Shown here piece by piece: positions 5,061 through 60,492 of a stretch of 64,000 nt of DNA. Under the pieces are notes generated by a model. That model worked only from the letters and a program-made list of their open reading frames with translations, was not told the origin of the DNA and ran no database searches. Position 1 is the stretch's first letter. Each line of letters starts with the position of its first letter. The translations under genes and the position numbers were made by a program. The stretch is from the IMG/VR virus record IMGVR_UViG_3300049793_000366, positions 62,001-126,000 of that record. One strand, 5' to 3'.

Positions 5061-5570
5061 TTACTTGTTAGTGTTAAGCAATTCCTTCTTTGTAGTTTCT
5101 ATCTCTGTTTTCATATATTTATCGAAATCCTGATAATCTTTATTAACCTTACTCTTCAACGCTGTTAACTCATCTGTTAACTTTTTATTATCATTTTGTA
5201 TTTGTGATAGTTGCGCTGCATTTTGTGATGCTAATGTTTTATCAGTTGTACTCTTTAAGTCATTTGTTTTATCCTGACCATCTTTAATACTTTTTTCTAT
5301 CTCACTTGCTCTTCTTTCGCTTTTAAGTATTTGAGCATATTTCAATAGATAGGCGTTCGGGATTTTAACACTACCGTTGACTACATTTGCTTTATCTAAA
5401 ATTCTCTTAGCTAAAGCATCAGGGTCTTCATTTGCATTATTCAAATAGATTGATTTCAATTGACCAGCAAAGGACTTATAATCCTTAACCATTTTACTTT
5501 TTGTTTCTAAACTTTGCGTTATAGATTTATCTAGGTCGTTAAACTCTTCGAACAATGCGATGTATTTCAT
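5061..5570 (-). CDS. Coiled-coil protein with capsid-targeting-like leader (putative internal head protein)
   Basis: Probable true start MKYIALFEEF at 5570, directly after an AATATATA motif (5576-5583). Confidence 0.6.
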   Translation of the reverse strand: MKYIALFEEFNDLDKSITQSLETKSKMVKDYKSFAGQLKSIYLNNANEDPDALAKRILDKANVVNGSVKIPNAYLLKYAQILKSERRASEIEKSIKDGQDKTNDLKSTTDKTLASQNAAQLSQIQNDNKKLTDELTALKSKVNKDYQDFDKYMKTEIETTKKELLNTNK

Positions 5571-5615
5571 ATAAGTATATATTAAATGAAAACATGAGTA
5601 TTTTGTCAAATAAAA

Positions 5616-5637
5616 AAGCCCTCTGATGTGAGGGCTT
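5616..5637 (-). terminator. Intrinsic terminator after the ankyrin gene
   Basis: AAGCCCTC-N6-GAGGGCTT stem with an adjacent A-tract (U-tract on the minus strand). Confidence 0.7.
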
Positions 5638-5640
5638 AGT

Positions 5641-7392
5641 TTATTGCTTGTTTTTACTGATATTATCCTTTAATAGTTTAATAATTTTTTGTGACCTAAT
5701 AGCTTCTTCGCCAGTAGAATCCTCAAGGGCAATCTCAGCCCATTTTATAGCTTGAACATATCCTCTATCAGCTCCATTTTCAATTAGCCATTGAACTAAA
5801 TCAAGGAATCCATTTTCAGCCGCAAATTTTAGTGGCATACCTTCTTTAGAGTTGATGTCAACACCTTTCTCTACTAAATATTTAATAAGTGGTAAGTTAC
5901 CTGTTCTACAAGCCGCTCTAATAGCATAAGAATCTTCGAAGTTAGGGTCAACACCATATTCTTCTACAATATACTTAACAGCATCGAAGTCACCTGATAA
6001 TGATTTAAATGCTTCCTTATTCATATTAGCACCATGTTTAAGTAATAACTTTAACATATCAAATGTTTTAACCAATGATACTGCTGTTTTATTTTTCTCA
6101 TAAGGGATATCCGGATTAGCACCATTATCCAATAAGAATTCAGCAACTTCTAAATTATTCGATTTAACAGCATTTCTAAGTGGTTTACCAGCTTCGATGT
6201 TAATATTAGCACCTTCCGCTAAACACTCTTTAATTCTATCAAGTGATGGAAGCTTTTCAGCTTTTAATTCTCTTGATGCTCTGTTATATTTTTCTTTTTG
6301 GTCTTTTTCTTCATTCGTCATTGCTCTTACAGCCGCATTCTCTTCTTCATCTAATCTTTTTCTAACTTGTCCTTCATCGATATAAGAGTCATTCTTAGTA
6401 TGTGCAGTGTCAAAAGTACCTTTCATATTAACTGTACAACCAATGATAGACTTTAAATCTGTTGGTGGTAAAGCATAGTCAAAAATAGCATACTGCTTTG
6501 TAAATTTATTCTCGTTACCAACGTATTGGTCCCAATGTCCTTGCGTTCTTGCGATACACCAGTTTGTTTGAGCGCATAATAATCGACAAGCATCAAATGA
6601 TTTTAATTCAACGATAACTCGTTCTTTTTCTTCATTCATAAATGCGATTGTAGCACCCCACTTTTCACCATATTTAGCATTAACATCTTCAACCTTCTTC
6701 AATAGTTCAGTCAAACCATCATTAGTACAAGCCTTAACGTATTGCTCCATCCTTTTAGTAGCCTCATCTGCTGTCTTAATAGCTGAAATCTTTTTGAAGA
6801 ATTCTTTTCTAAGAATTGGATCCAAATCGAATAGACCAATAGCAGCACCATCAAATCTTTCTTTTAATTTACCAGTGATACGCAAAACGTCATGTTTTAA
6901 CTCAGATGGTAACTCATCAATAATCTTTTTTACCTTACGGTAGTTTTTAATACGTTCGATATCATCGACTAAATCTTCATAAGCTGTTCTATCTTCAAGA
7001 CCATATCTCTTTTCAGATTCTAAATATTTATCAACTTGTTTAGGAAGCTTGTTTAAGCTATCTCGATTTTCAAGTAATGTATTATACAATGCTGTTAAAT
7101 CATCCATTGATACTTTATCTCTAAAAAAGAATCTTGTGAATACCTCAGTATAACCTGGGTTTCTTTCAACAAGTTTTTTAATTTTTAAGAAGTCAGGATC
7201 ATTTTCAGCCTTTCTAATTTCGTCTGGTGTTAATTTAGCTTGAACTGGTGCTTCTCCCTCTTTAGGTTCAACAGGAGTTTCACCCTCTGTTTTAGAAGCT
7301 AAATATGTATCACGCATGAATTTTTTAGCATTCTGTACGTTTTCATTGACAGTTTCTTTGTTTATAAAGTCGTTGTATTTACGCAAATTCAT
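5641..7392 (-). CDS. Ankyrin-repeat protein with N-terminal domain and capsid-targeting-like leader
   Basis: C-terminal ankyrin-like repeats (PLRNAVKSNNLEVAEFLLDNGANPD, AIRAACRTGNLPLIKYLVEKGVDIN, PLKFAAENGFLDLVQWLIENGAD); N-terminus MNLRKYNDFINKETVNE; central TNWCIA..W..Y motif. Confidence 0.85.
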   Translation of the reverse strand: MNLRKYNDFINKETVNENVQNAKKFMRDTYLASKTEGETPVEPKEGEAPVQAKLTPDEIRKAENDPDFLKIKKLVERNPGYTEVFTRFFFRDKVSMDDLTALYNTLLENRDSLNKLPKQVDKYLESEKRYGLEDRTAYEDLVDDIERIKNYRKVKKIIDELPSELKHDVLRITGKLKERFDGAAIGLFDLDPILRKEFFKKISAIKTADEATKRMEQYVKACTNDGLTELLKKVEDVNAKYGEKWGATIAFMNEEKERVIVELKSFDACRLLCAQTNWCIARTQGHWDQYVGNENKFTKQYAIFDYALPPTDLKSIIGCTVNMKGTFDTAHTKNDSYIDEGQVRKRLDEEENAAVRAMTNEEKDQKEKYNRASRELKAEKLPSLDRIKECLAEGANINIEAGKPLRNAVKSNNLEVAEFLLDNGANPDIPYEKNKTAVSLVKTFDMLKLLLKHGANMNKEAFKSLSGDFDAVKYIVEEYGVDPNFEDSYAIRAACRTGNLPLIKYLVEKGVDINSKEGMPLKFAAENGFLDLVQWLIENGADRGYVQAIKWAEIALEDSTGEEAIRSQKIIKLLKDNISKNKQ

Positions 7393-7395
7393 ATA

Positions 7396-8796
7396 TTACT
7401 TATTAATTTTTGATTCTTCTATTAAGTTAGCCTCGCGTAAATAAATCTCTACGGACATACTATCCTTTATAAAGCCAGAAAGCTTTTTAACTTTTTCATA
7501 ATCTTTAGCATCTAAGGCATCATCAATCTCACTACGTAAATCACTTTGAGACCATCCTGAATAATCTGTATCATCTGATTTAGTTTCTTGTGGTGTTTCA
7601 GCTTGAGTTGGTTCAGTATTATAGTCATCTTCACCATCATTTGGTAAAGCAGTATTATAATCATAATCCTTAAGCTCCTTAATTGTAGCAGCTATTAAGC
7701 TATCAACCTGAGTTCTAGCTTCATCTGTTTTCATTAAGATACCCTTCATTAACTTTAAGAAGTCCTCTGCTGGTAATACTATCATTTTACCAAATACAAA
7801 TTCTCTAATATTTGGAAAGTCATCAACACTTGTATTTACATTTAAGAAATCACGTAAGTCAGCTGCTACTTCTGGTCCGTATCTGAAATCCTCAGCTTCG
7901 TCTTCAAATGTATCAGTATTCATTAATACCTTTTTAGCAAGTTCTTCACTTCCTGGTATTCCTGCTGATGTTATTAATTCATAAATACCCTTAACTGCTT
8001 CGTGTAATAACATTGGAAAGTCAACACCGATTGCTTTAACTGTAATTTCAAATTCATTATATGATTCTTCTTGTTCTTCTTGTGCTTCTTCCTCTTTTTC
8101 CTCTTCCTTATTAGGGTCTTCTGGTTTATACTCTTTTGGTTTCCATTCAACTTTACAAGCTCCTGCTAAACCTTCTGGTACATTTTCCATCATATCACTC
8201 TTAGCTTCGATAGGAATAATCCAGTCTAACTTATCAGCAATAGAAGTAATTTCATTCCATACTTGAAATGCTCTTTCACCATCACGCTCACCTAATATTT
8301 GTTTAATGCCTTCTTTAACTTCTGGCATATTTAAGATGTGCTTTGTATTCTTAGCCTCACCTTGTGTTATAAGGTTTGCTATTTTTCTTTTATCAACTTC
8401 CGATTTCAATTCTGGATCTTCAACCTTTCTCAATTCTGGTAGTTTACAAGTTTCAGAATCACAATCATCCATAAAGTTTTTAACTGCTCTTCTACCACGA
8501 GCAAACTTAATATCCAATTTGATACCATCTAAGATAGCACCATAATTATCCATAATAACTTTAGTAGCTAAATTCTCAAGTTCTACTTCTTTACCAGAAA
8601 TTATTCCTTGTGATTCACCGACTAATTGCATAATCCTTGGTATTAGTGTGTGTGAATTTGTACGGTCATTAATACCGAATCTCTCTTTTGCTCTATCCTC
8701 TACGCTTTTAACGTACTTAGGTTCACTTCCCTTACCTGGAATACCATCATTATCTTTAATGCTGATTTCTTCTAAAAACTTCTTATAATCCTTCAT
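7396..8796 (-). CDS. Hypothetical protein (LLHEAVKG motif, short UVR-like helical pair near the C-terminus)
   Basis: 466-aa ORF starting MKDYKKFLEE; overlaps the upstream gene by a TAATG junction. Confidence 0.6.
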   Translation of the reverse strand: MKDYKKFLEEISIKDNDGIPGKGSEPKYVKSVEDRAKERFGINDRTNSHTLIPRIMQLVGESQGIISGKEVELENLATKVIMDNYGAILDGIKLDIKFARGRRAVKNFMDDCDSETCKLPELRKVEDPELKSEVDKRKIANLITQGEAKNTKHILNMPEVKEGIKQILGERDGERAFQVWNEITSIADKLDWIIPIEAKSDMMENVPEGLAGACKVEWKPKEYKPEDPNKEEEKEEEAQEEQEESYNEFEITVKAIGVDFPMLLHEAVKGIYELITSAGIPGSEELAKKVLMNTDTFEDEAEDFRYGPEVAADLRDFLNVNTSVDDFPNIREFVFGKMIVLPAEDFLKLMKGILMKTDEARTQVDSLIAATIKELKDYDYNTALPNDGEDDYNTEPTQAETPQETKSDDTDYSGWSQSDLRSEIDDALDAKDYEKVKKLSGFIKDSMSVEIYLREANLIEESKINK

Positions 8797-9029
8797 TATT
8801 TAACATAAGTTTTGATATCGTCGCCAGCATCATTTAAAAGGGCGATAAATCTTTTAGCAACATCCTCAGCACTTGCTTTAGGAGCAGGTTCAACAGATGG
8901 CTTATCTCTTCTTATTGGAGATGGTCTGCTTGGTCTTGGTGTTGTTGTAGGCTTGATACCAGGCGTTGTTGTAGGCTTAGTAGCCGGCTCAGCCATAGCA
9001 AAGGATTCAAATTTTTTAAGATATTTCAT
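8796..9029 (-). CDS. Small Pro/Thr-rich protein with capsid-targeting-like leader
   Basis: MKYLKKFESF leader, KPTTTP repeated twice; TATATATA at 9054-9061 upstream. Confidence 0.65.
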   Translation of the reverse strand: MKYLKKFESFAMAEPATKPTTTPGIKPTTTPRPSRPSPIRRDKPSVEPAPKASAEDVAKRFIALLNDAGDDIKTYVK

Positions 9030-29591: not shown

Positions 29592-31331
29592 ATGGCCAGT
29601 TATAACCCACAGAACAATCCGCAAAATCAAGTTGTGACAGGGGGTGCCGCACAGAATCGCGGTGTTTTCAGTAGAATACTAAGAGATTTATCGTCGTGGG
29701 GAATGAATTATGATGACATGATTATCAAAAATTCATATGCTATTTCCATTAATGAAGATCCATATTCTCAAAAGGGATTTGGTATGTACGATTTCTTTTC
29801 ACAAAAGGCTATTGCCTCTATTATGGCTAAGAAGTCTATTCCTTATTTAGATAGAGCTTACCCAGATAAAAGAAGAATATTAAGAGAATATTCAATCAAA
29901 GATGAAGTACGAGATTTTGTTACTACAATAGCTGATGAGGTTATTATTTATGGTGATGATGGTCAGAAGTTTTGTAAGCCGAGGTCATTACCAGATGAAT
30001 ACTCTCAAGAAATTAAGAATAAATATCAAGAAGTATTTGAGAAGATATATTCTAAATATGGATTTAATGATGGTATATCTGCTTGGTACTATATAAAGGG
30101 ATTTCTTATTGATGGTTACTTAGCATTCGAAATCGTTTATGATGATAAATTCAAGAATATCATTCACTTTAACCAATTAGACCCAGCTACTCTAGTTCCG
30201 GGTTATGAACCAGCAACGGGTAAACATATTTGGATTCAATATCCAGAAGACCCACAGCTTAGAAAGATTCTATTAGACTCACAAGTTGTTTTCATATCAT
30301 ATTCAACACAAAAAGAATATTCTGAGACATCTTATGTTGAGGGATTAATTAGACCATATAATCAATTAAAAATCATAGAGCAAACAAGAATTATGTTCAA
30401 TATGTTGAACGCTATGATTTATCAGAAGTTTACAATTCCAATTACAGGTTTATCGCGTCAACGTGCAGAAGAGCAAATATCACAATTGATATCCGATTAT
30501 TCAGAAGAGGTTGAATGGGATGACTCATTAGGAACTGTTATGATTAATGGTTCGAAGCATTTACCATATAACAAACAATTGTGGTTCCCTGAGGGTGAAG
30601 GTGGGTCTCCTGCTTTTGAATTAGTATCACCAGAAGGACACAATCTAAATGAGTCTGATATGCTTACTTGGTTTTTTAATGCACTTAAGAGAGCAAGTAG
30701 AATTCCATTCTCACGATTTGATAAGGATAATGGTGGTGGTAATATATTCTCTGATGCATCTGAGATGACAAGAGATGAGGTGAAATTTTCAAACTTCATT
30801 AATAGATTAAGAACCGCTTATAGAGAGATACTTGTTAAGCCAATGAAACTTCAAATGATTATTGAATTTCCTGAGCTTATAAAGGATGAAATATTTCAAA
30901 ATGCTGTTGGTATCGAATTCAATTCAAATGATTTATTTGAAGAATGGAAGAAACTAAATAACCTACAGAAGAGAGCAGAGATTGTATCAAGTATGTTAGG
31001 TTCAATTCAAACAGCAGATGGTCAACCATATTTTCATGTTGACTATTTAGTAGATACAGTTTTAAAGTTGACTGAGGATGAAAAACAAGCTAACGCACGT
31101 TACAAACTTAAAGGTGGAGCAAATGCTACCGCTGGAGAAGGTGGCGCACCAGGCGGTGTAGGCGGAGCTGAACCAGGTGGACCTGATTTAGGTGGTGGTG
31201 GTGGAGCTGAACCAGGTGGTGACATCGGTGGCGCACCAGAAGAAGGTGGTGATGTAGGTGGTCCTGAACCGGGTGGTCCTGAACCAGGAGGTGATACAGA
31301 AGGTGCTGGTGGTGACGAATTTGAATTCTAA
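29592..31331 (+). CDS. gp20: Portal protein with Gly/Pro/Glu-rich C-terminal tail
   Basis: FLIDGYLAFE, LDPATL, SYVEGLIRPYNQLKIIE, WFP..EG, LKRASRIPFSRF, ITRDE-like MTRDEVKF; AATATATA at 29562-29569. Confidence 0.93.
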   Translation: MASYNPQNNPQNQVVTGGAAQNRGVFSRILRDLSSWGMNYDDMIIKNSYAISINEDPYSQKGFGMYDFFSQKAIASIMAKKSIPYLDRAYPDKRRILREYSIKDEVRDFVTTIADEVIIYGDDGQKFCKPRSLPDEYSQEIKNKYQEVFEKIYSKYGFNDGISAWYYIKGFLIDGYLAFEIVYDDKFKNIIHFNQLDPATLVPGYEPATGKHIWIQYPEDPQLRKILLDSQVVFISYSTQKEYSETSYVEGLIRPYNQLKIIEQTRIMFNMLNAMIYQKFTIPITGLSRQRAEEQISQLISDYSEEVEWDDSLGTVMINGSKHLPYNKQLWFPEGEGGSPAFELVSPEGHNLNESDMLTWFFNALKRASRIPFSRFDKDNGGGNIFSDASEMTRDEVKFSNFINRLRTAYREILVKPMKLQMIIEFPELIKDEIFQNAVGIEFNSNDLFEEWKKLNNLQKRAEIVSSMLGSIQTADGQPYFHVDYLVDTVLKLTEDEKQANARYKLKGGANATAGEGGAPGGVGGAEPGGPDLGGGGGAEPGGDIGGAPEEGGDVGGPEPGGPEPGGDTEGAGGDEFEF

Positions 31332-31392: not shown

Positions 31393-33666
31393 ATGAAACC
31401 AGTATTAATTGTAGAACACAACACTAGTTCACTTCGTCCTCTAAATGAGAACGCGACTGGGGAAAAAGATTGGATCTTAAGCGGAACGTTTACTGAATTC
31501 GGTGTAAAAAACCGTAATGAGCGTATCTATACTGCTGAAAAATTTCTTCCTTGTCTTAACGAATTGAACGAGCGTATTACTACTATGGGTGTAGTTTACG
31601 GTGAGTTCGACCATCCAGATGTATTTGATACATCTCTATCTAGAGCGTCACACCTTATCAAGTCTACACGCTATGTAAACGAGTCTAACAAAGTAGAAGG
31701 TGAAATTAAATTACTTAACACTTATTGGGGTAAAGAAGCTAAAGCATTAGTTCAAGACGGATGCCCAATCTTTGTTTCTTCAAGAGCTGCTGGTATCACT
31801 GAATCTGACGGAACTGTAACACTTAAAAAGTTATTTACTTATGACATTGTTGCTGATCCTGGTTTTGCTTCTGCTAAGATGGAAGTAAGATCCTTAAATG
31901 AATCTTTTGGATTTAATTCTAACGCAAACTTCAGAATATATGAAATGTCTAACGACTCAAAAATTAATGATTTATTCAATATGAACAAGAATGAATTTGT
32001 AACAAAGCAACAATTGACTGATTACTCTAAGTATTTAGTTAAGGAACTTGCTTCGACTAAAGAACAAGTTACCAAAGCTATTAAGACTGGAAACGTTGAG
32101 CCAAAGAAATTGGATCAAATGATGGAGTATTATGAGAACTTAAATACTACAAGTACACAAATTGTTAAATACTTAGATTATTTATCAGAAAAAGTACAAA
32201 TCGTAGTTAACGAAAACAATTCTTTAAAAGAAACTGCTTCTAAGCTTATGAAGCATAATGATTATTTAGCTGAGAACTTAGAAAAAGCAATTGGTTATAC
32301 TGAATACTTAGCTGAGAACTTAGATAAGAACATTGAATACTCTGAATATTTAGCGGAAAATTTAGATAAGAATATTTCTTATGCTGAATACCTTGCTGAG
32401 AATGTTGACAAAAACATTTCTTACTCAGAATATATTGCTGAGAACTTAGATAAAAACATTGCATACTCTGAATATTTAGCAGAAAACTTAGATAAGAATA
32501 TTGCTTACTCTGAGTATATCGCTGAAAATTTATCAAAAAACATTGACTATTCTGAATATTTAGCAGAACACGTTGATAATACAATTGCGTATTCTGAATA
32601 TTTAGCAGAACACGTTGAAGGAAACATCAAATACTCTGAATATTTAGCAGAGAATTTAGATGATACTATTGCATACTCGGATTATATCGCTGAGTCTTTA
32701 GATAAAACTATTACTTATGCTGGTATGATTACTGAAAAATTAAATGGTTCAAAATTAAATGAATCAATTGAAGGTGGTAAAATTTTAACACTTGAAGATT
32801 ATGGATTTGAAGCAGAAGAAGAAGTTCTTCCAATCGAAAACGGTCAAGAAGAAGGTGCTGAAGAAGAATTACTTCCACTTGAAGACGGAGAAGAGAATAT
32901 CGATGACGTTGATGGTGAAGAACAACCACAAGAAGGTGATGAATCAATCATCGCTAAATTACAAGACTTAAACGCAGAAGAAGGTGACTTATTAAACGCA
33001 TTAGCAGGTGAAGAATCTGTTGAAGGTGAAGAGTCTGCTGAAAATCTTCCATTGGAAGGTGAAGAAGCTCCTGCTGAGGGTGGTCAAGAAGAAGGTGCTG
33101 AAGGAGAAGAAGACTTCGACGGTGGTGCTGATGAAGACGAAACTCAATTTGAGTCCAACACGGATCTATCAAAACAAATAGATACTCTAATCGCAGAAGC
33201 TAAGAAACGTAAAGCTTCAGAAACAAGCGATTTACATTTCTTGAAATTTTTAAACAAGAGTCAAGCTGACAGTTTCAACAGCTTAACAAATGAAGAACGC
33301 GAACTTGTTACTGTGTACCTAAACGAAAACACGTATTTCTCAAGCGCAGATGTTCTACGTTTAATGAATGAAGCTCTATCGACTAAAAATGAGTCAATGG
33401 AAGAAAAGCTAATCAGATTGATGCCAGAAAACATTAAGCCAATTTGGGAGCAAATGAATGAATCTTCAAAGAAGAGCATTTTATCACAAGCAAGATTATA
33501 TCCTGACTTGAACAGTGAGCAAAAAGTAGAACACTTTTGGTTAACGAGAAACCTTAAAAAGAACGAGTCAACTAAGAAATTAGTATCTCACGAGGCTATC
33601 ATTCAAGAAGATAAATTATCTGACAATGAGATGAATTCTATCTTAGAAAGATTTAAAAATCTATAA
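31393..33666 (+). CDS. gp21: Prohead protease (gp21-like) fused to a scaffold/core domain
   Basis: NRNERIY, GEFDHP, VSSRAAG and YDIVADPG protease motifs; followed by a coiled coil, tandem 14-aa repeats and an acidic region. Confidence 0.9.
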   Translation: MKPVLIVEHNTSSLRPLNENATGEKDWILSGTFTEFGVKNRNERIYTAEKFLPCLNELNERITTMGVVYGEFDHPDVFDTSLSRASHLIKSTRYVNESNKVEGEIKLLNTYWGKEAKALVQDGCPIFVSSRAAGITESDGTVTLKKLFTYDIVADPGFASAKMEVRSLNESFGFNSNANFRIYEMSNDSKINDLFNMNKNEFVTKQQLTDYSKYLVKELASTKEQVTKAIKTGNVEPKKLDQMMEYYENLNTTSTQIVKYLDYLSEKVQIVVNENNSLKETASKLMKHNDYLAENLEKAIGYTEYLAENLDKNIEYSEYLAENLDKNISYAEYLAENVDKNISYSEYIAENLDKNIAYSEYLAENLDKNIAYSEYIAENLSKNIDYSEYLAEHVDNTIAYSEYLAEHVEGNIKYSEYLAENLDDTIAYSDYIAESLDKTITYAGMITEKLNGSKLNESIEGGKILTLEDYGFEAEEEVLPIENGQEEGAEEELLPLEDGEENIDDVDGEEQPQEGDESIIAKLQDLNAEEGDLLNALAGEESVEGEESAENLPLEGEEAPAEGGQEEGAEGEEDFDGGADEDETQFESNTDLSKQIDTLIAEAKKRKASETSDLHFLKFLNKSQADSFNSLTNEERELVTVYLNENTYFSSADVLRLMNEALSTKNESMEEKLIRLMPENIKPIWEQMNESSKKSILSQARLYPDLNSEQKVEHFWLTRNLKKNESTKKLVSHEAIIQEDKLSDNEMNSILERFKNL
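32254..32757 (+). repeat. Twelve tandem 42-nt (14-aa) coding repeats in the scaffold
   Basis: Consensus YSEYLAENLDKNIx from HNDYLAENLEKAIG to YAGMITEKLNGSKL; synonymous variation between copies. Confidence 0.9.
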
Positions 33667-33749: not shown

Positions 33750-35426
33750 ATGTCACACATTAGAATAGACAAACAAAAAGCAATTAAGAAGTGGACACCT
33801 GTTCTTGAGAACATGGGAGTTAAAGATTCTGAAAGAATCGACTGGATGGCGGAATACGCTGAGTTCCACTCAATTAATGAAAATGCTTACGTTAATCAGC
33901 ATAACTTAGCTGGTTTAGGTAACGCTCTTTCTCCTCAACCTTCAAGCATCCCAGGTCAAACTATCGGTGCTTACACAACTAACGGTGGTGTAGTTGGTTC
34001 AGGTGATATCGGACAACAACTTTTACCAGTAGCGATGAAGATTGCTGCTCAAACTATCGGTCTTGACTTGGTAGCGGTAAAGCCAACTCCGGGTCCAAAA
34101 ATCGATTTATTATATGTAGATTTCGCATATGATGACACTCCAATGGGTGAAGGTCGTCCTCAAGTTTTCAAAGTAAACAACGCTTCTGCGGCTGCTATTG
34201 CTAACTTAAGAACCCTTATCACAATCGCTGGTGCGCGTGAAGTGCAAGGTGGATTAACTGGTGCTAAAATTTGGGTTTCTATCAACGCAACTGCGTCTGG
34301 TACTTTCTCTTACGGTGCAACAGAAAACTCTGCTCCTGCGAACAAAAAAGGATGGGTTGAATTCTTAGGTTTCTCTCGTATCGATGGTTATCCAATGTTA
34401 CGTGCTTACCGTCAGAACAACTACACAGGACAAAACAATTGGGCATATGACCAAACAGTAAATACATTCACTTCAACAGGTGATATCGCATCTCAAATCA
34501 CTATGATTTCTGGTGTAGCATTCTCTTCTGCTGCTGTAGAATTAATTTCTGCTCTTGAAGACCATATCCCAGGTTTCGTATCTAACTGGGCTGATAATAA
34601 CTTATCTCCAATGAACCGTAATGCTGATGAGAACTCTTATCCTGGTATTATTGCTCCAAGAGTATCAAGTAAATCAGTACAAGTTGGTACTATCGAAATT
34701 TCTTCTGCTTTAAAGCGTACAGAAATTGAAGATATCAAAGCTAACACAGGTATGGATATCGTTCAAAAGATGGAATCTATCCTTGTTAACGAATTATCTC
34801 AAACAATCTCTAAACAAATTGTTGCGAAGATTTTCGAAATGGGTGATTTAAACAGAGCTTCTGCTCCAACTTTAACTGCTACGGCTGGTATCGCGGACAG
34901 AACTATCTTCGACTTTGACGTTACAAGTTATTTAGCTACTAACGCACCAGGTGGAGAAACATCTCACGCAGTTCAACGTAAGTTAATCTCTAAGATTTTC
35001 AACGCAAGTAACTACTTAGCAACAGAAGGACGTATCGGGCCTGCACAGTTCGCTGTGACAAACGGTAACTTAGCTTCTGTATTAATGGATATCTCTGGAT
35101 ATACTATTAACCCAGCTAAGTCTAAGTTAAATACTGCTGGACAATTATACCCAGTTGGAACAATCGGTGATATCACTATCTACGTTGATCCATACATGAA
35201 GTATAACGACAACCGTATCGTTTTAGGACGTAAGAACAACCCTGACCAACCAGGTATCATCTTCGTTCCTTACTTGATGGCACAATCAATCAGCATCATC
35301 TCTGAAGCGACTTTCGCTCCAAGAATGTTACTAAGAAGCCGTTACGCGGTGACTGAAGTAGGTTGGTTCCCTCAAAAACAATATATGACACTTAAGGTGT
35401 ACGATGCAAATCAGAACCTTATCTAA
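33750..35426 (+). CDS. gp23: Major capsid protein
   Basis: W.PVLE start, AQTIGLDLVAVKP, ELSQTISKQI, GTIGDITIYVDPY, FVPY, TFAP...SRYAV; putative maturation site SINE/N. Confidence 0.93.
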   Translation: MSHIRIDKQKAIKKWTPVLENMGVKDSERIDWMAEYAEFHSINENAYVNQHNLAGLGNALSPQPSSIPGQTIGAYTTNGGVVGSGDIGQQLLPVAMKIAAQTIGLDLVAVKPTPGPKIDLLYVDFAYDDTPMGEGRPQVFKVNNASAAAIANLRTLITIAGAREVQGGLTGAKIWVSINATASGTFSYGATENSAPANKKGWVEFLGFSRIDGYPMLRAYRQNNYTGQNNWAYDQTVNTFTSTGDIASQITMISGVAFSSAAVELISALEDHIPGFVSNWADNNLSPMNRNADENSYPGIIAPRVSSKSVQVGTIEISSALKRTEIEDIKANTGMDIVQKMESILVNELSQTISKQIVAKIFEMGDLNRASAPTLTATAGIADRTIFDFDVTSYLATNAPGGETSHAVQRKLISKIFNASNYLATEGRIGPAQFAVTNGNLASVLMDISGYTINPAKSKLNTAGQLYPVGTIGDITIYVDPYMKYNDNRIVLGRKNNPDQPGIIFVPYLMAQSISIISEATFAPRMLLRSRYAVTEVGWFPQKQYMTLKVYDANQNLI

Positions 35427-55031: not shown

Positions 55032-56174
55032 ATGCTGGATGTAACTAAACAATGGATCGAAAACACACCGAAAGAATACAGAAAGAAATTCGGTCAATAT
55101 TTTACCCCTTCTCAAATAAGAAGTAGGCTATTCGAACTTTTACCAAAAATGGAGAATGCCTTAGTGCTTGAACCAGCTATTGGAACTGGTGAGTTTGTAG
55201 AAGACATACAACAGAATTTAAAAGGTTGTACGATAAATGGTTGTGATATAGATCCTGAAATAATTAAGAATGTATCACCGAGCATCCCTGTTAAATGTAT
55301 GTCATTCCTTGACATGAAAGCTGAATCGATATATGATTACGTTATTACTAACCCACCATATTATGAATTTACATTAGATGAGTCTACTAAAGAGAAATTC
55401 AATTATGTAGTTGATGGTAGAGTAAATATTTACTCTCTTTTCATAAAACATTCTATTGATTTCTTAAAGCCAGGTGGTTATTTAGCATTTGTGGTTCCTA
55501 CGTCAATGAATAATGGTAGATACTTCGAAAGACTTAGAAGCTATATAATGAATAATTGTGAGATTGAACACATTGAACTATTTAACAGTAGAAACTTTAT
55601 TGATGCTCAACAGAATGTACAGATTGTTATTCTTAGAAAAGCTTTAAATACTGGTAAGAATATATTTTCTAAAAATGGGCTTATTATATTTACACCTGAC
55701 TGGCAGAAACTTTCAAGTTACTATAAAGACAGTAAATCGATTAAAGAACTTGGATATGCGGTAAAAACTGGTAGTGTTGATTGGTCTAAGAATAAAGAGA
55801 AGCTAATCAACGATTCAAGTTACACGAAGTTAATCTGGTCTCATAATATTAAAAGAGGTAGTATAACACTTAGTACCAATAATGATAAGAAGCCTCAGTA
55901 TATAAATGCTCATGGTATAGAAGGCCCAGCAATAGTAGTCAATAGAATTACGGGTGCTGTTGGTAAAGGTGCTATCAAAGCTGGTATTGTTACTGGACGA
56001 TTTTTAGCTGAAAATCACGTAAATGTGATTACTCCGACTAACCCTCAATGTGAACTTAGTGTGATTTTGAAGTCCTTATGTGACCCAAGAACAGTTGAGT
56101 TATTACAGATGATAACTGGTAATACCCAGCTTTCTAAGACAGAATTAGAAAATTTAATACCAATTCGTATATAA
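55032..56174 (+). CDS. Solitary amino (N6-adenine-type) DNA methyltransferase, TaqI/Eco57I-like
   Basis: FGQYFTP, LEPAIGTG, NPPY, NIYSLF, GGYLAFVVP and a C-terminal target-recognition-like region. Confidence 0.85.
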   Translation: MLDVTKQWIENTPKEYRKKFGQYFTPSQIRSRLFELLPKMENALVLEPAIGTGEFVEDIQQNLKGCTINGCDIDPEIIKNVSPSIPVKCMSFLDMKAESIYDYVITNPPYYEFTLDESTKEKFNYVVDGRVNIYSLFIKHSIDFLKPGGYLAFVVPTSMNNGRYFERLRSYIMNNCEIEHIELFNSRNFIDAQQNVQIVILRKALNTGKNIFSKNGLIIFTPDWQKLSSYYKDSKSIKELGYAVKTGSVDWSKNKEKLINDSSYTKLIWSHNIKRGSITLSTNNDKKPQYINAHGIEGPAIVVNRITGAVGKGAIKAGIVTGRFLAENHVNVITPTNPQCELSVILKSLCDPRTVELLQMITGNTQLSKTELENLIPIRI

Positions 56175-56188
56175 ATTGTCCGGAATAT

Positions 56189-56219
56189 TTTGATATATAA
56201 CTGAAATTCACTATATTTG
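56189..56219 (+). promoter_or_regulatory. Bacteroidota promoter with an embedded late-like motif
   Basis: TTTG (56189-56192)-N19-TATATTTG (56212-56219); GATATATA at 56192-56199. Confidence 0.75.
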
Positions 56220-56223
56220 TGGT

Positions 56224-57441
56224 ATGACCAAAATTCAAAAGTTTTTTCAGTTTAATGAAAGTGCGCTAGGCTCTACTTTTTGGAATTTAATTCCAGAGTC
56301 TATTAAGACTATTCATGCCGTTTTTCAAGCAAGTGGTTATAAGCTATTCTTGGTCGGCGGTGCTGTGCGAGATTTTATTCAAGATGATATTCCAAAAGAT
56401 TATGACTTAGCTACTGATGCTCACCCGAAAGAGGTCATGAGCCTATTGGATGGTTATGAACTTAACTTACAAGGTAAAGCATTTGGTGTGGTTGTGGTAT
56501 ATACCGAAGACCAACCTCTTGGTATGGAGATAGCTACATTCAGAAAGGATGTTTCTAAAGGTAGAAATCCTTTAGTTGAGCTTATTGGTGTTACAATAGA
56601 AGATGATGTTAGAAGACGTGATATCACATACAATGCGTTATTCTTCGATTTGGATAAAAAGGAGATTGTAGATTTAGTTGGTGGCGTTGAAGATTTGAAG
56701 AACAAAATCACAAGAATGGTTGGTGATGCGATTGAGCGATTAGATGAAGATTCATTGAGAATTCTTAGAGCGTTCAGATTCGCCGCGAGATATAACAGTG
56801 AACTTGATGCTGATTTAGTTTCAGCATTGAGAAGAAGAAACTGGTTGAAAAATATTAACCACGAGACTGGTAAGCTTGAAAGAATCTCACAAGAGAGAAT
56901 TTGGCAAGATGAAATTGTTAAAGCATGGAAACAAGCTAAGAACAACTATACCAAGTATTTAAAATTCTTCACTGAGTTTGATATGTGGCCAGAAGTATTT
57001 CCGGGTGCTGTAATAAACTCTGATATCGTTAAGTGTGAACACTTCGAGGTTTACATGGCTAACCTTTTCAGAAATATGGATGTGGATGTTGCTCACCCTC
57101 AGAAGTCAGAAGCAGTATTGGTAGCTAATTACAAAATTGATGGTAATACAGCCGCAGTGATTGTTTTCTTAGTTAGTTTGTTACAGTTAACACCACAGAA
57201 TGCTCTTAGATTGTATAGAACTAAGACAAGATGCGTTTCTATGGGCTTTGAAGATATAGACCCAATGATAATCGATTGGTTCAATGTTAACTCAATAACC
57301 GATTCGACACATTCTAAATTCATCAGTTACAGACCTACTGTTGATGTTGAGTTTTTAAAATCTCAGGGTTTTAAAGATAAAGCTCTTGGTGATGAAATTC
57401 AGCGATTAGAGGTGATAGAATTCACTAAGTTAATAAAGTAA
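56224..57441 (+). CDS. cca: Class II tRNA nucleotidyltransferase (CCA-adding / poly(A) polymerase family) without HD domain
   Basis: LVGGAVRD, PKDYDLAT, EIATFR, RRDITYNAL, GGVEDL, EDSLRILRAFRFAAR and ISQERI; leader MTKIQKFFQFNES. Confidence 0.9.
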   Translation: MTKIQKFFQFNESALGSTFWNLIPESIKTIHAVFQASGYKLFLVGGAVRDFIQDDIPKDYDLATDAHPKEVMSLLDGYELNLQGKAFGVVVVYTEDQPLGMEIATFRKDVSKGRNPLVELIGVTIEDDVRRRDITYNALFFDLDKKEIVDLVGGVEDLKNKITRMVGDAIERLDEDSLRILRAFRFAARYNSELDADLVSALRRRNWLKNINHETGKLERISQERIWQDEIVKAWKQAKNNYTKYLKFFTEFDMWPEVFPGAVINSDIVKCEHFEVYMANLFRNMDVDVAHPQKSEAVLVANYKIDGNTAAVIVFLVSLLQLTPQNALRLYRTKTRCVSMGFEDIDPMIIDWFNVNSITDSTHSKFISYRPTVDVEFLKSQGFKDKALGDEIQRLEVIEFTKLIK

Positions 57442-57466
57442 AATTAGAATTCAATATATAACGACA

Positions 57467-58210
57467 ATGGCAAGATTACAATACATAAAAGATGTTTTAG
57501 GAAATAACTATGTGGGTATAGATGTTTACGCAGAAGAGGTTGCTCCTTATTTACAAAAACTGAAAGATTACATAGATGATGATAAGCAATTTGAAATACT
57601 AACTGCTAATCAAAAGTTGCGTGACCACGATAAATGGCACATCACTGTAATTAATGTATTTGATTATAACGACTTAGCTAAGTCACTTGGAATGAAAAAC
57701 TTTCTTGAGAGGTTAGATAATATCTTCAAGATGGAAGTTAACGATATCGATTTTAAAGGTATCGGTAGAGCAGAAAGAAATGGTAATGAAGCTTACTTTG
57801 TTGTTTGTCAGTCTGACTTTTTGAATTCTATTCGAGATTCTTTCAAATTAAACCCAATTGACCTTCATTGTACACTTGGGTTTAATAGAAAGGATGTTCA
57901 TGGTGTGAGGAAGAATGAGATTTTGGAGAATAAACCAAAATTTTTAAAAACTATTTCCAATCTTTATCATAAAGATAAATCTCTATCATTTATAAACGAC
58001 ATTCAAAATTTAGGAATGAAGTTAGATAATATAGAGGTTTTATCCATTACTGATACAGTGTTAACTATTCGTTCAAACGATGTGTGTTATGGTATATCTT
58101 TAATAAACACTGGTGATGAAGACGTTCTACGTATTGTATCGCAGTACGCAGATAATGGGAGTAAATCAATCAATCAATATCAAATAGAGAAAATACTGGG
58201 TAAACTATGA
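57467..58210 (+). CDS. 2H phosphoesterase
   Basis: Two HxT motifs (WHITVI, LHCTLGF) about 75 aa apart; AATATATA at 57453-57460. Confidence 0.75.
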   Translation: MARLQYIKDVLGNNYVGIDVYAEEVAPYLQKLKDYIDDDKQFEILTANQKLRDHDKWHITVINVFDYNDLAKSLGMKNFLERLDNIFKMEVNDIDFKGIGRAERNGNEAYFVVCQSDFLNSIRDSFKLNPIDLHCTLGFNRKDVHGVRKNEILENKPKFLKTISNLYHKDKSLSFINDIQNLGMKLDNIEVLSITDTVLTIRSNDVCYGISLINTGDEDVLRIVSQYADNGSKSINQYQIEKILGKL

Positions 58211-58536
58211 CCAGAATAAAAATTAAGCGCACCACAATGACAGAGGTTTTAGGGTACTTTAACTTATCGGAATGTACCGACAGAAAAAAAGTAACAACGT
58301 ATCTCAATGATTTAGCTGATAATTGTAAGATTACTTGGCACCAAGAAGATTATGACACTATAAAGATAGTGGATCTTGATTTGGATGAAACAGAGATAGA
58401 GGACATTACTAAGTTCTTGAGCGATTACGATGTAATACAAGATATCATTCAAGAGGATAATGATGATGATTTTTATGATTCTCGTGGTGATTTCGATGAT
58501 GATTTCAGTGATTTTGGCTATGGTGACATGGTTTAG
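58207..58536 (+). CDS. Hypothetical protein with acidic C-terminus
   Basis: ATGA overlap with the 2H gene; D-rich tail. Confidence 0.55.
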   Translation: MTRIKIKRTTMTEVLGYFNLSECTDRKKVTTYLNDLADNCKITWHQEDYDTIKIVDLDLDETEIEDITKFLSDYDVIQDIIQEDNDDDFYDSRGDFDDDFSDFGYGDMV

Positions 58537-59629: not shown

Positions 59630-59701
59630 GGTTTGGTAGCTCAATGGCAGAGCGGCGGATTCTAAACCCGAAGGTTGTGGGTTCGAACCCCATCCGAACC
59701 A
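59630..59701 (+). tRNA. Amber suppressor tRNA (anticodon CUA)
   Basis: Acceptor GGTTTGG/CCGAACC with A73; D-arm GCTC-AATGGCA-GAGC; anticodon loop TT-CTA-AA (59660-59666) on CGG/CCG; T-arm GTGGG-TTCGAAC-CCCAT; no encoded CCA. Confidence 0.78.
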
Positions 59702-59702
59702 C

Positions 59703-59789: not shown

Positions 59790-60492
59790 ACAATAAATTG
59801 ATTTTGGATATTGGTCTATCACCGCTCTTGAATACACCCATTCCTATAATTACGGAAATAGTATCATCTTTCTCTTCGGTTTTTATTGCGCGACTTATAA
59901 CTACGTCTAAATCATTCTTATTTATGATTAGAACAGACTTCTCAGTCCAAGTGGGTACTACATAGCATTTTCTATTATTAATGAAGCCAGCCTCAGAGAA
60001 ACCCATATTCTTACTAAATAGTAGACTATTCTGCTTTTTGTAAATATCATTGAATGCAGGCATACTGAATAAAACTATTGAGTCAGCCTTTAGACATGAT
60101 TCTATACTCGACATTACGTATTCCTTAGACTTAGTTTTCTTTGAGAAAAGTCTCTTGAAGAAATTCTTTGCCTTATAAAACTTGATGTATTCTATTACAT
60201 TAGCATTTGATGATAAATAATTTAGAATGTGACTATGAATGTGACTCTTAGCTAAATTAGCAGCTATTGGTGTTAAGTCAATATCATTTTTATTATGTTG
60301 GATATCAATATTATGTTCATCCAAAACACAGTCTATAAGTACCGTATCAGTTTCGATTAGGTCGCCTTTGTTGACGGTTGTTTGCTTTTGATACTTACCT
60401 TTATTTCTATCGATGTAGAAAATATTTACAATATCGCTAACGTTAGATGCATTCATAGCACCTGATAAAATCTCGTGTTTATCTATGTTCAT
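59788..60492 (-). CDS. Hypothetical protein
   Basis: 234-aa ORF converging on the terminator. Confidence 0.55.
   Translation of the reverse strand: MNIDKHEILSGAMNASNVSDIVNIFYIDRNKGKYQKQTTVNKGDLIETDTVLIDCVLDEHNIDIQHNKNDIDLTPIAANLAKSHIHSHILNYLSSNANVIEYIKFYKAKNFFKRLFSKKTKSKEYVMSSIESCLKADSIVLFSMPAFNDIYKKQNSLLFSKNMGFSEAGFINNRKCYVVPTWTEKSVLIINKNDLDVVISRAIKTEEKDDTISVIIGMGVFKSGDRPISKINLL

Follow-up and report, generated by a model that had tools for sequence, protein, structure and literature searches.

A class II tRNA nucleotidyltransferase, an ordinary enzyme read as CCA-adding, is encoded by a 508-kb Mahaphage-like soil phage of Bacteroidetes and carries a short N-terminal tag that is shared by about 90 unrelated proteins of the same phage and closely resembles the capsid-targeting peptide of phage T4, so that tRNA-repair enzymes may be packed into the virion. 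The gene lies at 56224-57441 (+) of the window, i.e. the 64,000-nucleotide stretch of DNA that was analysed, to which the coordinates below refer, and is the only PF01743 gene of the 507,910-bp genome. The earlier note had described here a consensus host promoter with a late motif embedded in its spacer and an N-terminal extension before the catalytic head, and all these features are indeed present in the sequence. Its interpretation, namely that the enzyme is made early for immediate use and again late for loading into virions, so that tRNA ends can be repaired at injection, is only partly supported.

Concerning the enzyme itself, the 405-aa product matches PF01743 (PolyA_pol head) with an E-value of 8.8e-28 and 97.6 bits against a Pfam cut-off of 23, over residues 41-163, and phrog_2244 with an E-value of 7.8e-54. 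The catalytic motifs A (GGAVRD at 45-50 and DYD at 59-61), B (RRRD at 130-133) and D (EDSLR at 175-179) are intact in the translation and invariant in 38 orthologues. The AlphaFold model has a pLDDT of 89.5, and a Foldseek search with it matched the CCA-adding enzymes 6QY6 (E = 2e-16 over 397 aligned columns), 1MIV and 4X4W over the full length, in agreement with a complete head-neck-body-tail fold. A megablast search of the region against the phage collection returned nothing, and relatives were found only by protein-level searches.

Family models do not separate CCA-adding from A-adding, CC-adding or poly(A) activity: all NCBIfam hits are far below their cut-offs, the best being the PcnB subfamily model (148 of 306 bits), with PRK13299 at 133 of 290. 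The possibility that the enzyme is an A-adding or CC-adding enzyme or a poly(A) polymerase is nevertheless considered unlikely, since it is the only PolyA_pol-head gene in a genome whose 61 tRNA genes almost all lack an encoded CCA, and since the closest solved folds are CCA-adding enzymes. The specificity is thus inferred from context. The genome encodes 61 tRNAs and a tmRNA, at most one of them with an encoded CCA, and finishing the phage's own tRNAs is a more obvious job, which the repair-at-injection account of the earlier note leaves out. No genetic code other than table 11 was needed for this genome.

The next gene (57467-58210, +) codes for a 2H phosphoesterase (2H-SAK; PF22547 at 1.2e-17), a likely partner that would open 2',3'-cyclic phosphate ends, and it stays downstream of the CCA gene in three relatives designated L001, L002 and L006. 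A AATATATA motif is found at 57453-57460 (+), 6 nt before its ATG. Its stop codon is overlapped by a gene for a small protein with an acidic tail (58207-58536, +), which has no family hit; a similar small acidic ORF follows the 2H gene in L001 and L002, and an ORF of matching size and position, compared on these two criteria only, is present in L006.

Upstream of the CCA gene, TTGATA (56190-56195), 16 nt and TATATT (56212-56217) form the best sigma-70-type match within 55900-57600, with 10 of 12 positions. However, the number of such matches in that stretch is no higher than in shuffled sequences (7 vs. 7.2 +/- 2.3), and the E. coli-type reading, not being above chance on its own, was dropped. 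The same bases are better read as a Bacteroidetes sigma-A promoter: TTTG (56189-56192, +; candidate -33 element), 19 nt, the -7 box TATATTTG (56212-56219, +; TAnnTTTG), 4 nt and the ATG at 56224. In such promoters TTTG lies about 19-21 nt upstream of the -7 box. The box spans -12 to -5 in Flavobacterium (PMC9723704), which places +1 at 56224, the A of the ATG, and predicts a leaderless mRNA.

This layout is above chance genome-wide: TATATTTG occurs 42 times in the 80 nt upstream of genes against 6 expected, and TAnnTTTG peaks at -15 to -11. Twenty-five genes have it at -20 to -8, 20 of them with a 4-6 nt gap to the ATG and 12 with TTTG 19-20 nt upstream. Most of those with a recognisable domain act in tRNA processing or RNA repair, the class including Rnl1, a PF09414 RNA ligase, a metallophosphatase, an AAA_33 kinase, a cREC domain protein, RnpA and a NUDIX protein, which fits early use. 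The -7 box is invariant in the closer relatives, whereas TTTG is not strictly kept. Just upstream of the -33 element, a TCCGGA palindrome (56179-56184, +) lies within TGTCCGGAA (56177-56185); TCCGGAAT and TCCGTATA are 9-10-fold enriched upstream of genes and the element recurs in or near host-type promoters, including that of the Rnl1 ligase gene, but only TGTCC is kept in relatives.

The spacer of this promoter contains GATATATA (56192-56199, +), a minority variant of the main phage motif of the genome, TTAATATATA, a candidate late promoter. GATATATA is 6.7-fold enriched upstream of genes (11 vs. 1.6) and the canonical AATATATA 14-fold (125 vs. 8.8). The ATATATA core precedes the sheath, terminase, portal, protease and capsid genes at -22 to -49, from which alone a late activity of the motif is inferred, and lies at -31 from the ATG of the CCA gene. 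In 85 genes it is found at -9 to -17, most often at -11. As a whole, only 69 of the 318 ATATATA of the genome lie in coding sequence, while 174 lie in the two upstream windows in sense orientation. With its T-rich upstream and A-rich downstream flanks, the site has a flank score of 1.66 bits, i.e. the 27th percentile of 88 other sites and above 88% of coding ATATATA; G replaces the usual A or T, as in 6% of sites.

A single working promoter, with the ATATATA being a relic or merely part of the AT-rich spacer and the gene being expressed early only, remains possible, though it is held to be less likely than not. The minority G, the middling flank score and the absence of such a promoter pair in the more distant relatives L001 and L002 speak in its favour, as does the fact that about 12% of all genes have the motif at that distance, so that its co-occurrence with a host-type promoter in 2 of 25 genes is not an excess in itself. 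Against it, the core is invariant in the relatives L003 and L006, which have the canonical A; in relatives at 77% and 64% protein identity it is invariant, and canonical, while neighbouring intergenic bases vary. Moreover, among the 25 host-promoter genes, only the two strongly tagged ones, CCA and Rnl1, also carry the motif (2 of 3 tagged vs. 0 of 22 untagged; Fisher p = 0.01).

The ORF starts at the only usable ATG, since a TGA lies in frame at 56191 and the next in-frame Met is residue 72, inside the catalytic head. The N-terminus reads MTKIQKFFQFNE-SALGSTFW, and CCA enzymes of other phages align only from query residue 19-40 onward, so that the extension of about 16 residues is real. Its residues 1-16 have a pLDDT below 50 in the model, i.e. 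they are predicted to be disordered. Codons 1-12 (56224-56259, +) encode the tag MTKIQKFFQFNE, a candidate capsid-targeting propeptide with a predicted cut after E12. It belongs to a family of N-terminal tags (consensus MKHLKKFEEFNEN) reaching 9 bits on the tag profile in 89 of 740 proteins, where about 1 is expected, and these proteins fall into 80 unrelated body families, which ruled out a single paralogous family. The CCA tag scores 16.8 bits but ranks only 72nd of the 89. Within the family, position 4 is L or I and position 7 is F or Y, both being among the most conserved positions after M1 and the same ones that target the T4 sequence (PMC9026906); the CCA tag has I4 and F7. Hydrophobic-x-E within residues 5-18 occurs in 70 of the 89 tagged vs. 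183 of the 651 other proteins. The phage motif lies directly upstream of 62% of tagged genes, against 17% of the rest.

The tag is kept in the 120 listed CCA orthologues, apart from those called from the second Met, and nearly all 120 Rnl1 orthologues read MKLFRY.EF[IL].ES, close to the YQEFIAE-A of T4 (PMC8442874). At the proposed cleavage site, the CCA tag has F-N-E/S, with F10 and E12 invariant in 38 orthologues but Phe rather than L or I at P3, while Rnl1 orthologues have I/L-x-E-S; many tags, including the commonest form MKHLK.FE.F, have no clear L/I-x-E site in a fixed register. A translation- or DNA-level origin of the tag, such as codon preferences at the start of leaderless mRNAs or a mobile promoter-plus-start cassette, might be suggested by the AT-rich genome and by the 10-fold enrichment, among tagged genes, of the motif that abuts the ATG (the leaderless layout). 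It was rejected as very unlikely, because synonymous codon use at the conserved positions mirrors genome-wide use (Leu is TTA 53%, CTT 30%, TTG 7% and CTA 7%; Lys is AAA 54% and AAG 46%), exchanges are by residue type (L/I and F/Y), and F10 and E12 are invariant across orthologues that differ at neighbouring residues. Selection thus acts on the protein.

The same genome has a T4 gp20-type portal protein (29592-31331, +; PF07230 at 9e-59), a T4 gp23-type major capsid protein (33750-35426, +; PF07068 at 4.6e-27 from residue 89) and a gp21-like prohead protease (31393-33666, +; phrog_207 at 6e-30, with a weak Peptidase_S77 hit at 1.3e-3). The latter is fused to a scaffold-like region with about 11 repeats of 14 residues, YSEY[LI]AENLDKNI (aa 300-455, nt 32290-32757), each holding the T4 gp21-type cleavage motif L/I-x-E. 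These repeats are conserved in LR745206 and LR756501, and are too conserved among relatives to reveal co-variation with the tag. Motifs similar to the tag occur in the repeats (YSEYLAEN) and in the capsid propeptide, which holds EFHSINE(44)N, a motif kept in relatives. A complex prediction with tag residues 1-40 and two copies of scaffold repeats 290-460 gave no answer, with a score of 0.00, which is not evidence either way. The tag family was also looked for in a cultured relative, but none was found in the last 50 kb of Tenacibaculum phage PTm1. A 50-kb stretch of Prevotella phage Lak-A1, read with TAG open since its coding density then rises from 61% to 86%, has none either.

A tag function other than capsid targeting, e.g. 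recruitment to another phage assembly or compartment, to a chaperone or to timed proteolysis, with the CCA enzyme acting only inside the infected cell, is considered rather unlikely but cannot be excluded. Twelve percent of all proteins is a great many for capsid cargo and far more than in T4, most tags lack a fixed L/I-x-E register, and the tagged proteins include housekeeping-like enzymes such as NUDIX, a kinase, Toprim and GNAT. On the other hand, besides the agreement at positions 4 and 7, the motifs in the scaffold and capsid propeptide and the link to the promoter motif of virion genes, a few tags are near-copies of the T4 sequence, such as MLKYLEFITEA (G000:C1:29393-30115, minus strand) and those of the Rnl1 orthologues.

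Taken together, and with about even confidence, the gene is best explained as coding for a class II CCA-adding enzyme of a huge (at least 508 kb) Mahaphage-like phage infecting a Bacteroidetes host. Its role, inferred from family and context, would be to add or restore the 3'-CCA on the phage's own tRNAs and on damaged tRNAs, the 2H phosphoesterase first clearing cyclic-phosphate ends. Early expression is shown as a sequence pattern, TTTG-N19-TATATTTG, from which host sigma-A RNA polymerase would start the transcript at the A of the ATG, making the gene one of about 25 presumed leaderless early genes. Late expression is inferred: a second start about 19 nt further upstream would be driven by the phage TATA-like motif, the enzyme being made again when proheads assemble. 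Packaging and cleavage are likewise inferred from sequence alone, the only public sequencing run found to hold this DNA being a soil DNA run, probably its source, with no RNA or proteome data found for this uncultured phage. In this view, the first 12-16 residues form a detachable tag that docks the protein onto the repeat-bearing scaffold core of the prohead, the gp21-like protease removes it after the invariant F-x-E (E12/S13), and the enzyme travels in the capsid and enters the next cell with the DNA.

A broader and more tentative reading, judged possible but less likely than not, is that Mahaphage-type huge phages have scaled up the T4 system into a sequence-readable ejected proteome of about 90 tagged proteins, including a CCA-adding enzyme and an Rnl1 RNA ligase, so that a tRNA repair kit would enter the cell ahead of any gene expression and blunt tRNA-cutting host defences. 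CCA-adding enzymes of huge phages are already on record, but the tag system appears undescribed. The tag (an N-terminal MK, L/I at position 4, F/Y at position 7 and a following Glu) would be a simple rule for predicting which proteins of an uncultured giant phage ride in the capsid. Its presence on two tRNA-repair enzymes across the whole clade suggests that repair may begin at injection, which bears on how phages outrun tRNA-targeting immunity. The clean split between a host-type, predicted leaderless early class, dominated by tRNA-processing and RNA-repair genes, and a phage TATA-like class serving virion and tagged genes gives a first map of the transcription programme of the largest known phages.

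Among known systems, the T4 capsid targeting sequence (MKTYQEFIAE of IPI/II/III, also on Alt), with its gp21 prohead protease, is likewise a short N-terminal peptide on unrelated proteins that begins with MK and has hydrophobic or aromatic residues at positions 4 and 7, in a genome with the same type of portal, capsid protein and protease and a scaffold rich in L/I-x-E sites (PMC9026906, PMC8442874); a Glu followed by a small residue ends the T4 peptide and also the CCA and Rnl1 tags, though many tags have no L/I-x-E site in a fixed register. The present tag, known from sequence only, differs by its approximately 90 carriers against a handful in T4, by the register of its commonest form, by the presence of tRNA-repair enzymes among the carriers and by the fusion of the protease to the repeat scaffold. 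Bacterial class II CCA-adding enzymes (e.g. 6QY6 and 1MIV) and those listed for jumbo and huge phages (PMC7824862, PMC7162821) share the fold, the catalytic motifs and the setting of a tRNA-rich phage genome with RNA-repair genes, but here a tag of 12-16 residues is added, and there is no HD phosphohydrolase domain, a separate 2H phosphoesterase gene lying next door. As for the T4 repair of tRNAs by Pnkp and Rnl1 against the PrrC anticodon nuclease, a phage-encoded kinase and phosphatase and an Rnl1-type ligase are found in both cases, here behind presumably early host-type promoters and in a larger set (two ligases, a cREC domain protein, 2H, metallophosphatase, CCA and RnpA); T4 Rnl1 starts directly with the ligase fold, whereas CCA and Rnl1 carry here a tag similar to the T4 sequence. 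In phiKZ and SPN3US, many head-internal proteins are processed after Glu (S/A-x-E) by a gp21-like protease (PMC5694885, PMC9026906), but their propeptides are mostly longer than 100 residues and share no common N-terminal motif. Finally, as with the T4 late promoter TATAAATA, a TATA-like 8-10-mer without a -35 element precedes the virion genes, and, as in the Bacteroidetes sigma-A promoter (-33 TTTG, -7 TAnnTTTG), the host-type -7 box sits at the standard distance (PMC9723704); the motif is here TTAATATATA, which abuts the ATG in 85 genes, and the host-type box also lies 4-6 nt from the ATG, so that leaderless mRNAs would be the rule, against 5.5% in Flavobacterium psychrophilum (PMC9723704).

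The window is bases 62001-126000 of a single 507,910-bp virus record, which is labelled a provirus by IMG/VR and is estimated by CheckV to be 97% complete, with a G+C content of about 32%. However, the identical CCA and Rnl1 proteins are also on record on a 711,805-bp contig, so that the record may be incomplete despite the CheckV estimate. The head genes are T4-like and comprise a gp20-type portal (PF07230, 9e-59), a gp23-type capsid protein (PF07068, 4.6e-27) and a head maturation protease, which hits phrog_207 at 6e-30 and Peptidase_S77 only weakly. The nearest relatives are the uncultured 634-735-kb phage genomes LR745206, LR756502 and LR756501, whose capsid proteins are 53-65% identical, followed further out by the Lak phages and the jumbo phages of Tenacibaculum, Chryseobacterium and Flavobacterium. 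The genomes above 634 kb are the Mahaphage clade, predicted to infect Bacteroidetes (PMC7162821). The one public run that contains this DNA is a soil metagenome.

The ORF at 56224-57441 encodes 405 residues, with a PolyA_pol head domain at residues 41-163 (PF01743, 8.8e-28) and a hit to the phage tRNA nucleotidyltransferase family phrog_2244 at 7.8e-54. Motifs A (GGAVRD, DYD), B (RRRD) and D (EDSLR) are present, and all are invariant in 38 orthologues. An AlphaFold model built on those orthologues has a mean pLDDT of 89.5, and its best structural matches, over the full length, are the CCA-adding enzymes 6QY6, 1MIV and 4X4W, whereas the NCBIfam models do not resolve the specificity. It is the only such gene in the genome, which also encodes 61 tRNAs, mostly in clusters between about 319 and 421 kb, plus a tmRNA at 59956-60348, and at most one tRNA gene has an encoded CCA. 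Finishing the phage's own tRNAs is therefore the plainest job for this enzyme, with the repair of trimmed 3' ends as a second. CCA-adding enzymes are already listed among the translation and RNA-repair genes of huge and jumbo phages (PMC7162821, PMC7824862). One tRNA, at window 59630-59702, has the anticodon CTA, which would read TAG; the genome nevertheless uses TAG as an ordinary stop in 102 of 740 called genes, and coding density under table 11 is 92%.

As for the neighbouring genes, an Eco57I/N6-type DNA methyltransferase (window 55032-56174) lies directly upstream of the CCA gene and is syntenic in the relatives L003 and L006. The next gene, at 57467-58210, is a 2H phosphoesterase (PF22547), followed by a small acidic ORF, and the 2H gene stays downstream of the CCA gene in three relatives. 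Since 2H enzymes open 2',3'-cyclic phosphates (PMC7824862), the pair could, by inference, stand in for the HD-domain CCA enzymes of bacteria.

Concerning the promoter, the TTGATA-16-TATATT arrangement proposed in the earlier note is the best sigma-70-type match nearby, but such matches are no more frequent here than in shuffled sequence. The same bases read as a Bacteroidetes sigma-A promoter, with TTTG (56189-56192), 19 nt, TATATTTG (56212-56219), 4 nt and the ATG, and genome-wide evidence supports this reading: TATATTTG is 7-fold enriched upstream of genes, TAnnTTTG peaks at -15 to -11, and 25 genes have it there, 20 of them 4-6 nt from the ATG and 12 with TTTG at 19-20 nt. In Flavobacterium the box spans -12 to -5 (PMC9723704), which places +1 on the A of the ATG, so that this class should give leaderless mRNAs. 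Twenty-three of the 25 genes were scanned against Pfam and nine had a hit, namely the CCA enzyme, an Rnl1-type ligase, a PF09414 RNA ligase, a metallophosphatase, an AAA_33 kinase, a cyclic-phosphate-processing cREC domain, the RNase P protein, a NUDIX protein and one HNH endonuclease. The host-type class is therefore largely a tRNA-processing and RNA-repair set, which fits the suggestion that the enzyme is made early for immediate use, although the timing itself is inferred. The palindrome TCCGGA (window 56179-56184), or TCCGTATA, recurs in or beside the host-type promoters and could be an operator, but it is not kept in the CCA spacer of relatives.

The strongest upstream signal in the genome is TTAATATATA, with AATATATA occurring 125 times against 8.8 expected, and GATATATA 11 times against 1.6. 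Its ATATATA core has two preferred positions, one abutting the ATG at -9 to -17 in 85 genes, and the other at -21 to -49 in 89 genes, where it is followed by an A-rich leader. This second group includes the sheath, terminase, portal, protease-scaffold and capsid genes. In the 85 genes (for example at window 57453-57469) the TTAATATATA motif ends about 4-6 nt before the ATG, and in 20 more the host-type -7 box does the same, so leaderless mRNAs seem to be common in this phage. The CCA site, taken as a late motif in the earlier note, has its core at -31 and a flank score of 1.66 bits, the 27th percentile of the other sites and above 88% of the ATATATA found in coding sequence, while G at the preceding base is seen in 6% of sites. 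In relatives whose CCA proteins are 77% and 64% identical, the methylase-CCA spacer varies, but the ATATATA core (there canonical AATATATA) and TATATTTG are both invariant. More distant relatives place the gene directly behind another gene, without this promoter pair. An Rnl1-type RNA ligase gene on the plus strand of the genome (G000:C1:375103-376446) has the same upstream layout as the CCA gene, with TTAATATATA, TGTCCGGAA, TATATTTG and then the ATG a few bases on, and it also carries an N-terminal tag, MKWLKERDKFSMNES.

Residues 1-16 of the CCA enzyme have pLDDT below 50 and the fold begins at about residue 17, and other phages' CCA enzymes align only from residue 19-40 onward. Within the clade the extension is kept: most of the 120 listed orthologues start M..KY..F[LC]ES, the window's subclade has MTKIQKF..F[NK]ES, and F10 and E12 are invariant. 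Some 24 of the 120 were called from a second Met just before the first conserved Trp; that Met is present in most orthologues but is Phe here, so this gene cannot make an untagged form.

The extension is not peculiar to this enzyme. A profile built from N-termini (consensus MKHLKKFEEFNEN) found 89 of 740 proteins, where about 1 is expected from internal windows, and simple patterns are 7- to 32-fold enriched at N-termini. With their first 20 residues removed, the tagged proteins fall into 80 unrelated BLAST clusters, and codon usage at the conserved positions equals genome-wide synonymous usage, so selection acts on the peptide. Carriers with a recognisable domain include the CCA enzyme, the Rnl1 ligase, an AAA_33 kinase, two NUDIX proteins, a Toprim protein, a GNAT and a 583-residue ankyrin protein lying in a late operon beside the sheath gene. 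The last belongs to four consecutive tagged genes (window 5061-9029, minus strand) next to the tail sheath gene, with a single upstream late-type motif, and another run of four tagged genes (G000:C1:400668-403108, minus strand) includes a NUDIX protein and an AAA_33 kinase. No cultured relative with the tag was found, since the 50-kb stretches sampled from PTm1 and Lak-A1 lack it, although three Lak proteins of 339-388 residues in the Lak-A1 stretch (20001-70000) start MNK.IK.L[LI]E[SN]LFDD, which could be Lak's own N-terminal tag or simply a paralogous family. In the literature searched, no paper mentioning huge phages or megaphages also mentions capsid targeting, so the tag family appears to be undescribed.

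The tag is also linked to the phage promoter motif: 62% of tagged genes have the TATA-like motif directly upstream, against 17% of the rest (odds ratio 8, p = 3e-18), and within the 25 host-promoter genes only CCA and Rnl1 also carry that motif, both being tagged (p = 0.01). This last point is what the model of the earlier note predicts, as a protein wanted early and also loaded into proheads would need a second, late promoter. As a whole, the features described in that note are confirmed in the sequence, and the enzyme is an ordinary one. The interpretation given in the note is partly supported: the promoter is a Bacteroidetes-type leaderless early promoter, as predicted from sequence, with a conserved phage motif inside it, and the proposed packaging leader is a member of a large tag family resembling the T4 capsid-targeting sequence (CTS). 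The enzyme family, the enrichment and conservation of both promoter elements and the sharing of the tag rest directly on the sequence analysis, whereas the activity on tRNA, the timing of expression, the two transcription starts, the packaging and the cleavage are inferred. The full model of early expression, late expression and packaging is considered about as likely as not, while that the tag is a real, modular, protein-level signal is held with high confidence.

The resemblance of the tag to a capsid-targeting sequence rests on a comparison with T4, whose CTS is MKTYQEFIAE (PMC8442874), in which residues 4 and 7 direct targeting and residues 8 and 10 direct processing, gp21 cutting after L/I-x-E (PMC9026906). 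Hydrophobic-x-E within residues 5-18 occurs in 70 of 89 tagged against 183 of 651 other proteins. Twelve percent of the proteome would nevertheless be a large cargo list, the commonest tag form has no cut site in a fixed register, the CCA tag is a weaker member of the family (rank 72 of 89), and a structure-based test of tag-scaffold binding gave no answer. The protease (window 31393-33666) is fused to a scaffold-like region with about 11 tandem 14-residue repeats of YSEY[LI]AENLDKNI (nt 32290-32757), followed by a very acidic stretch; each repeat holds L/I-A-E, and the repeats are conserved in LR745206 and in the 735-kb LR756501. The propeptide of the capsid protein holds EFHSINE-N. In 60 of the 89 tags the register is the same as in T4, with M1, K2, L/I at 4 and F/Y at 7, the last two among the most conserved positions, and the CCA tag has I4, Q5 and F7. 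Nearly all 120 Rnl1 orthologues start MKLFRY.EF[IL].ES, and one protein of the genome starts MLKYLEFITEA, which matches T4 at 6 of the 10 CTS positions.
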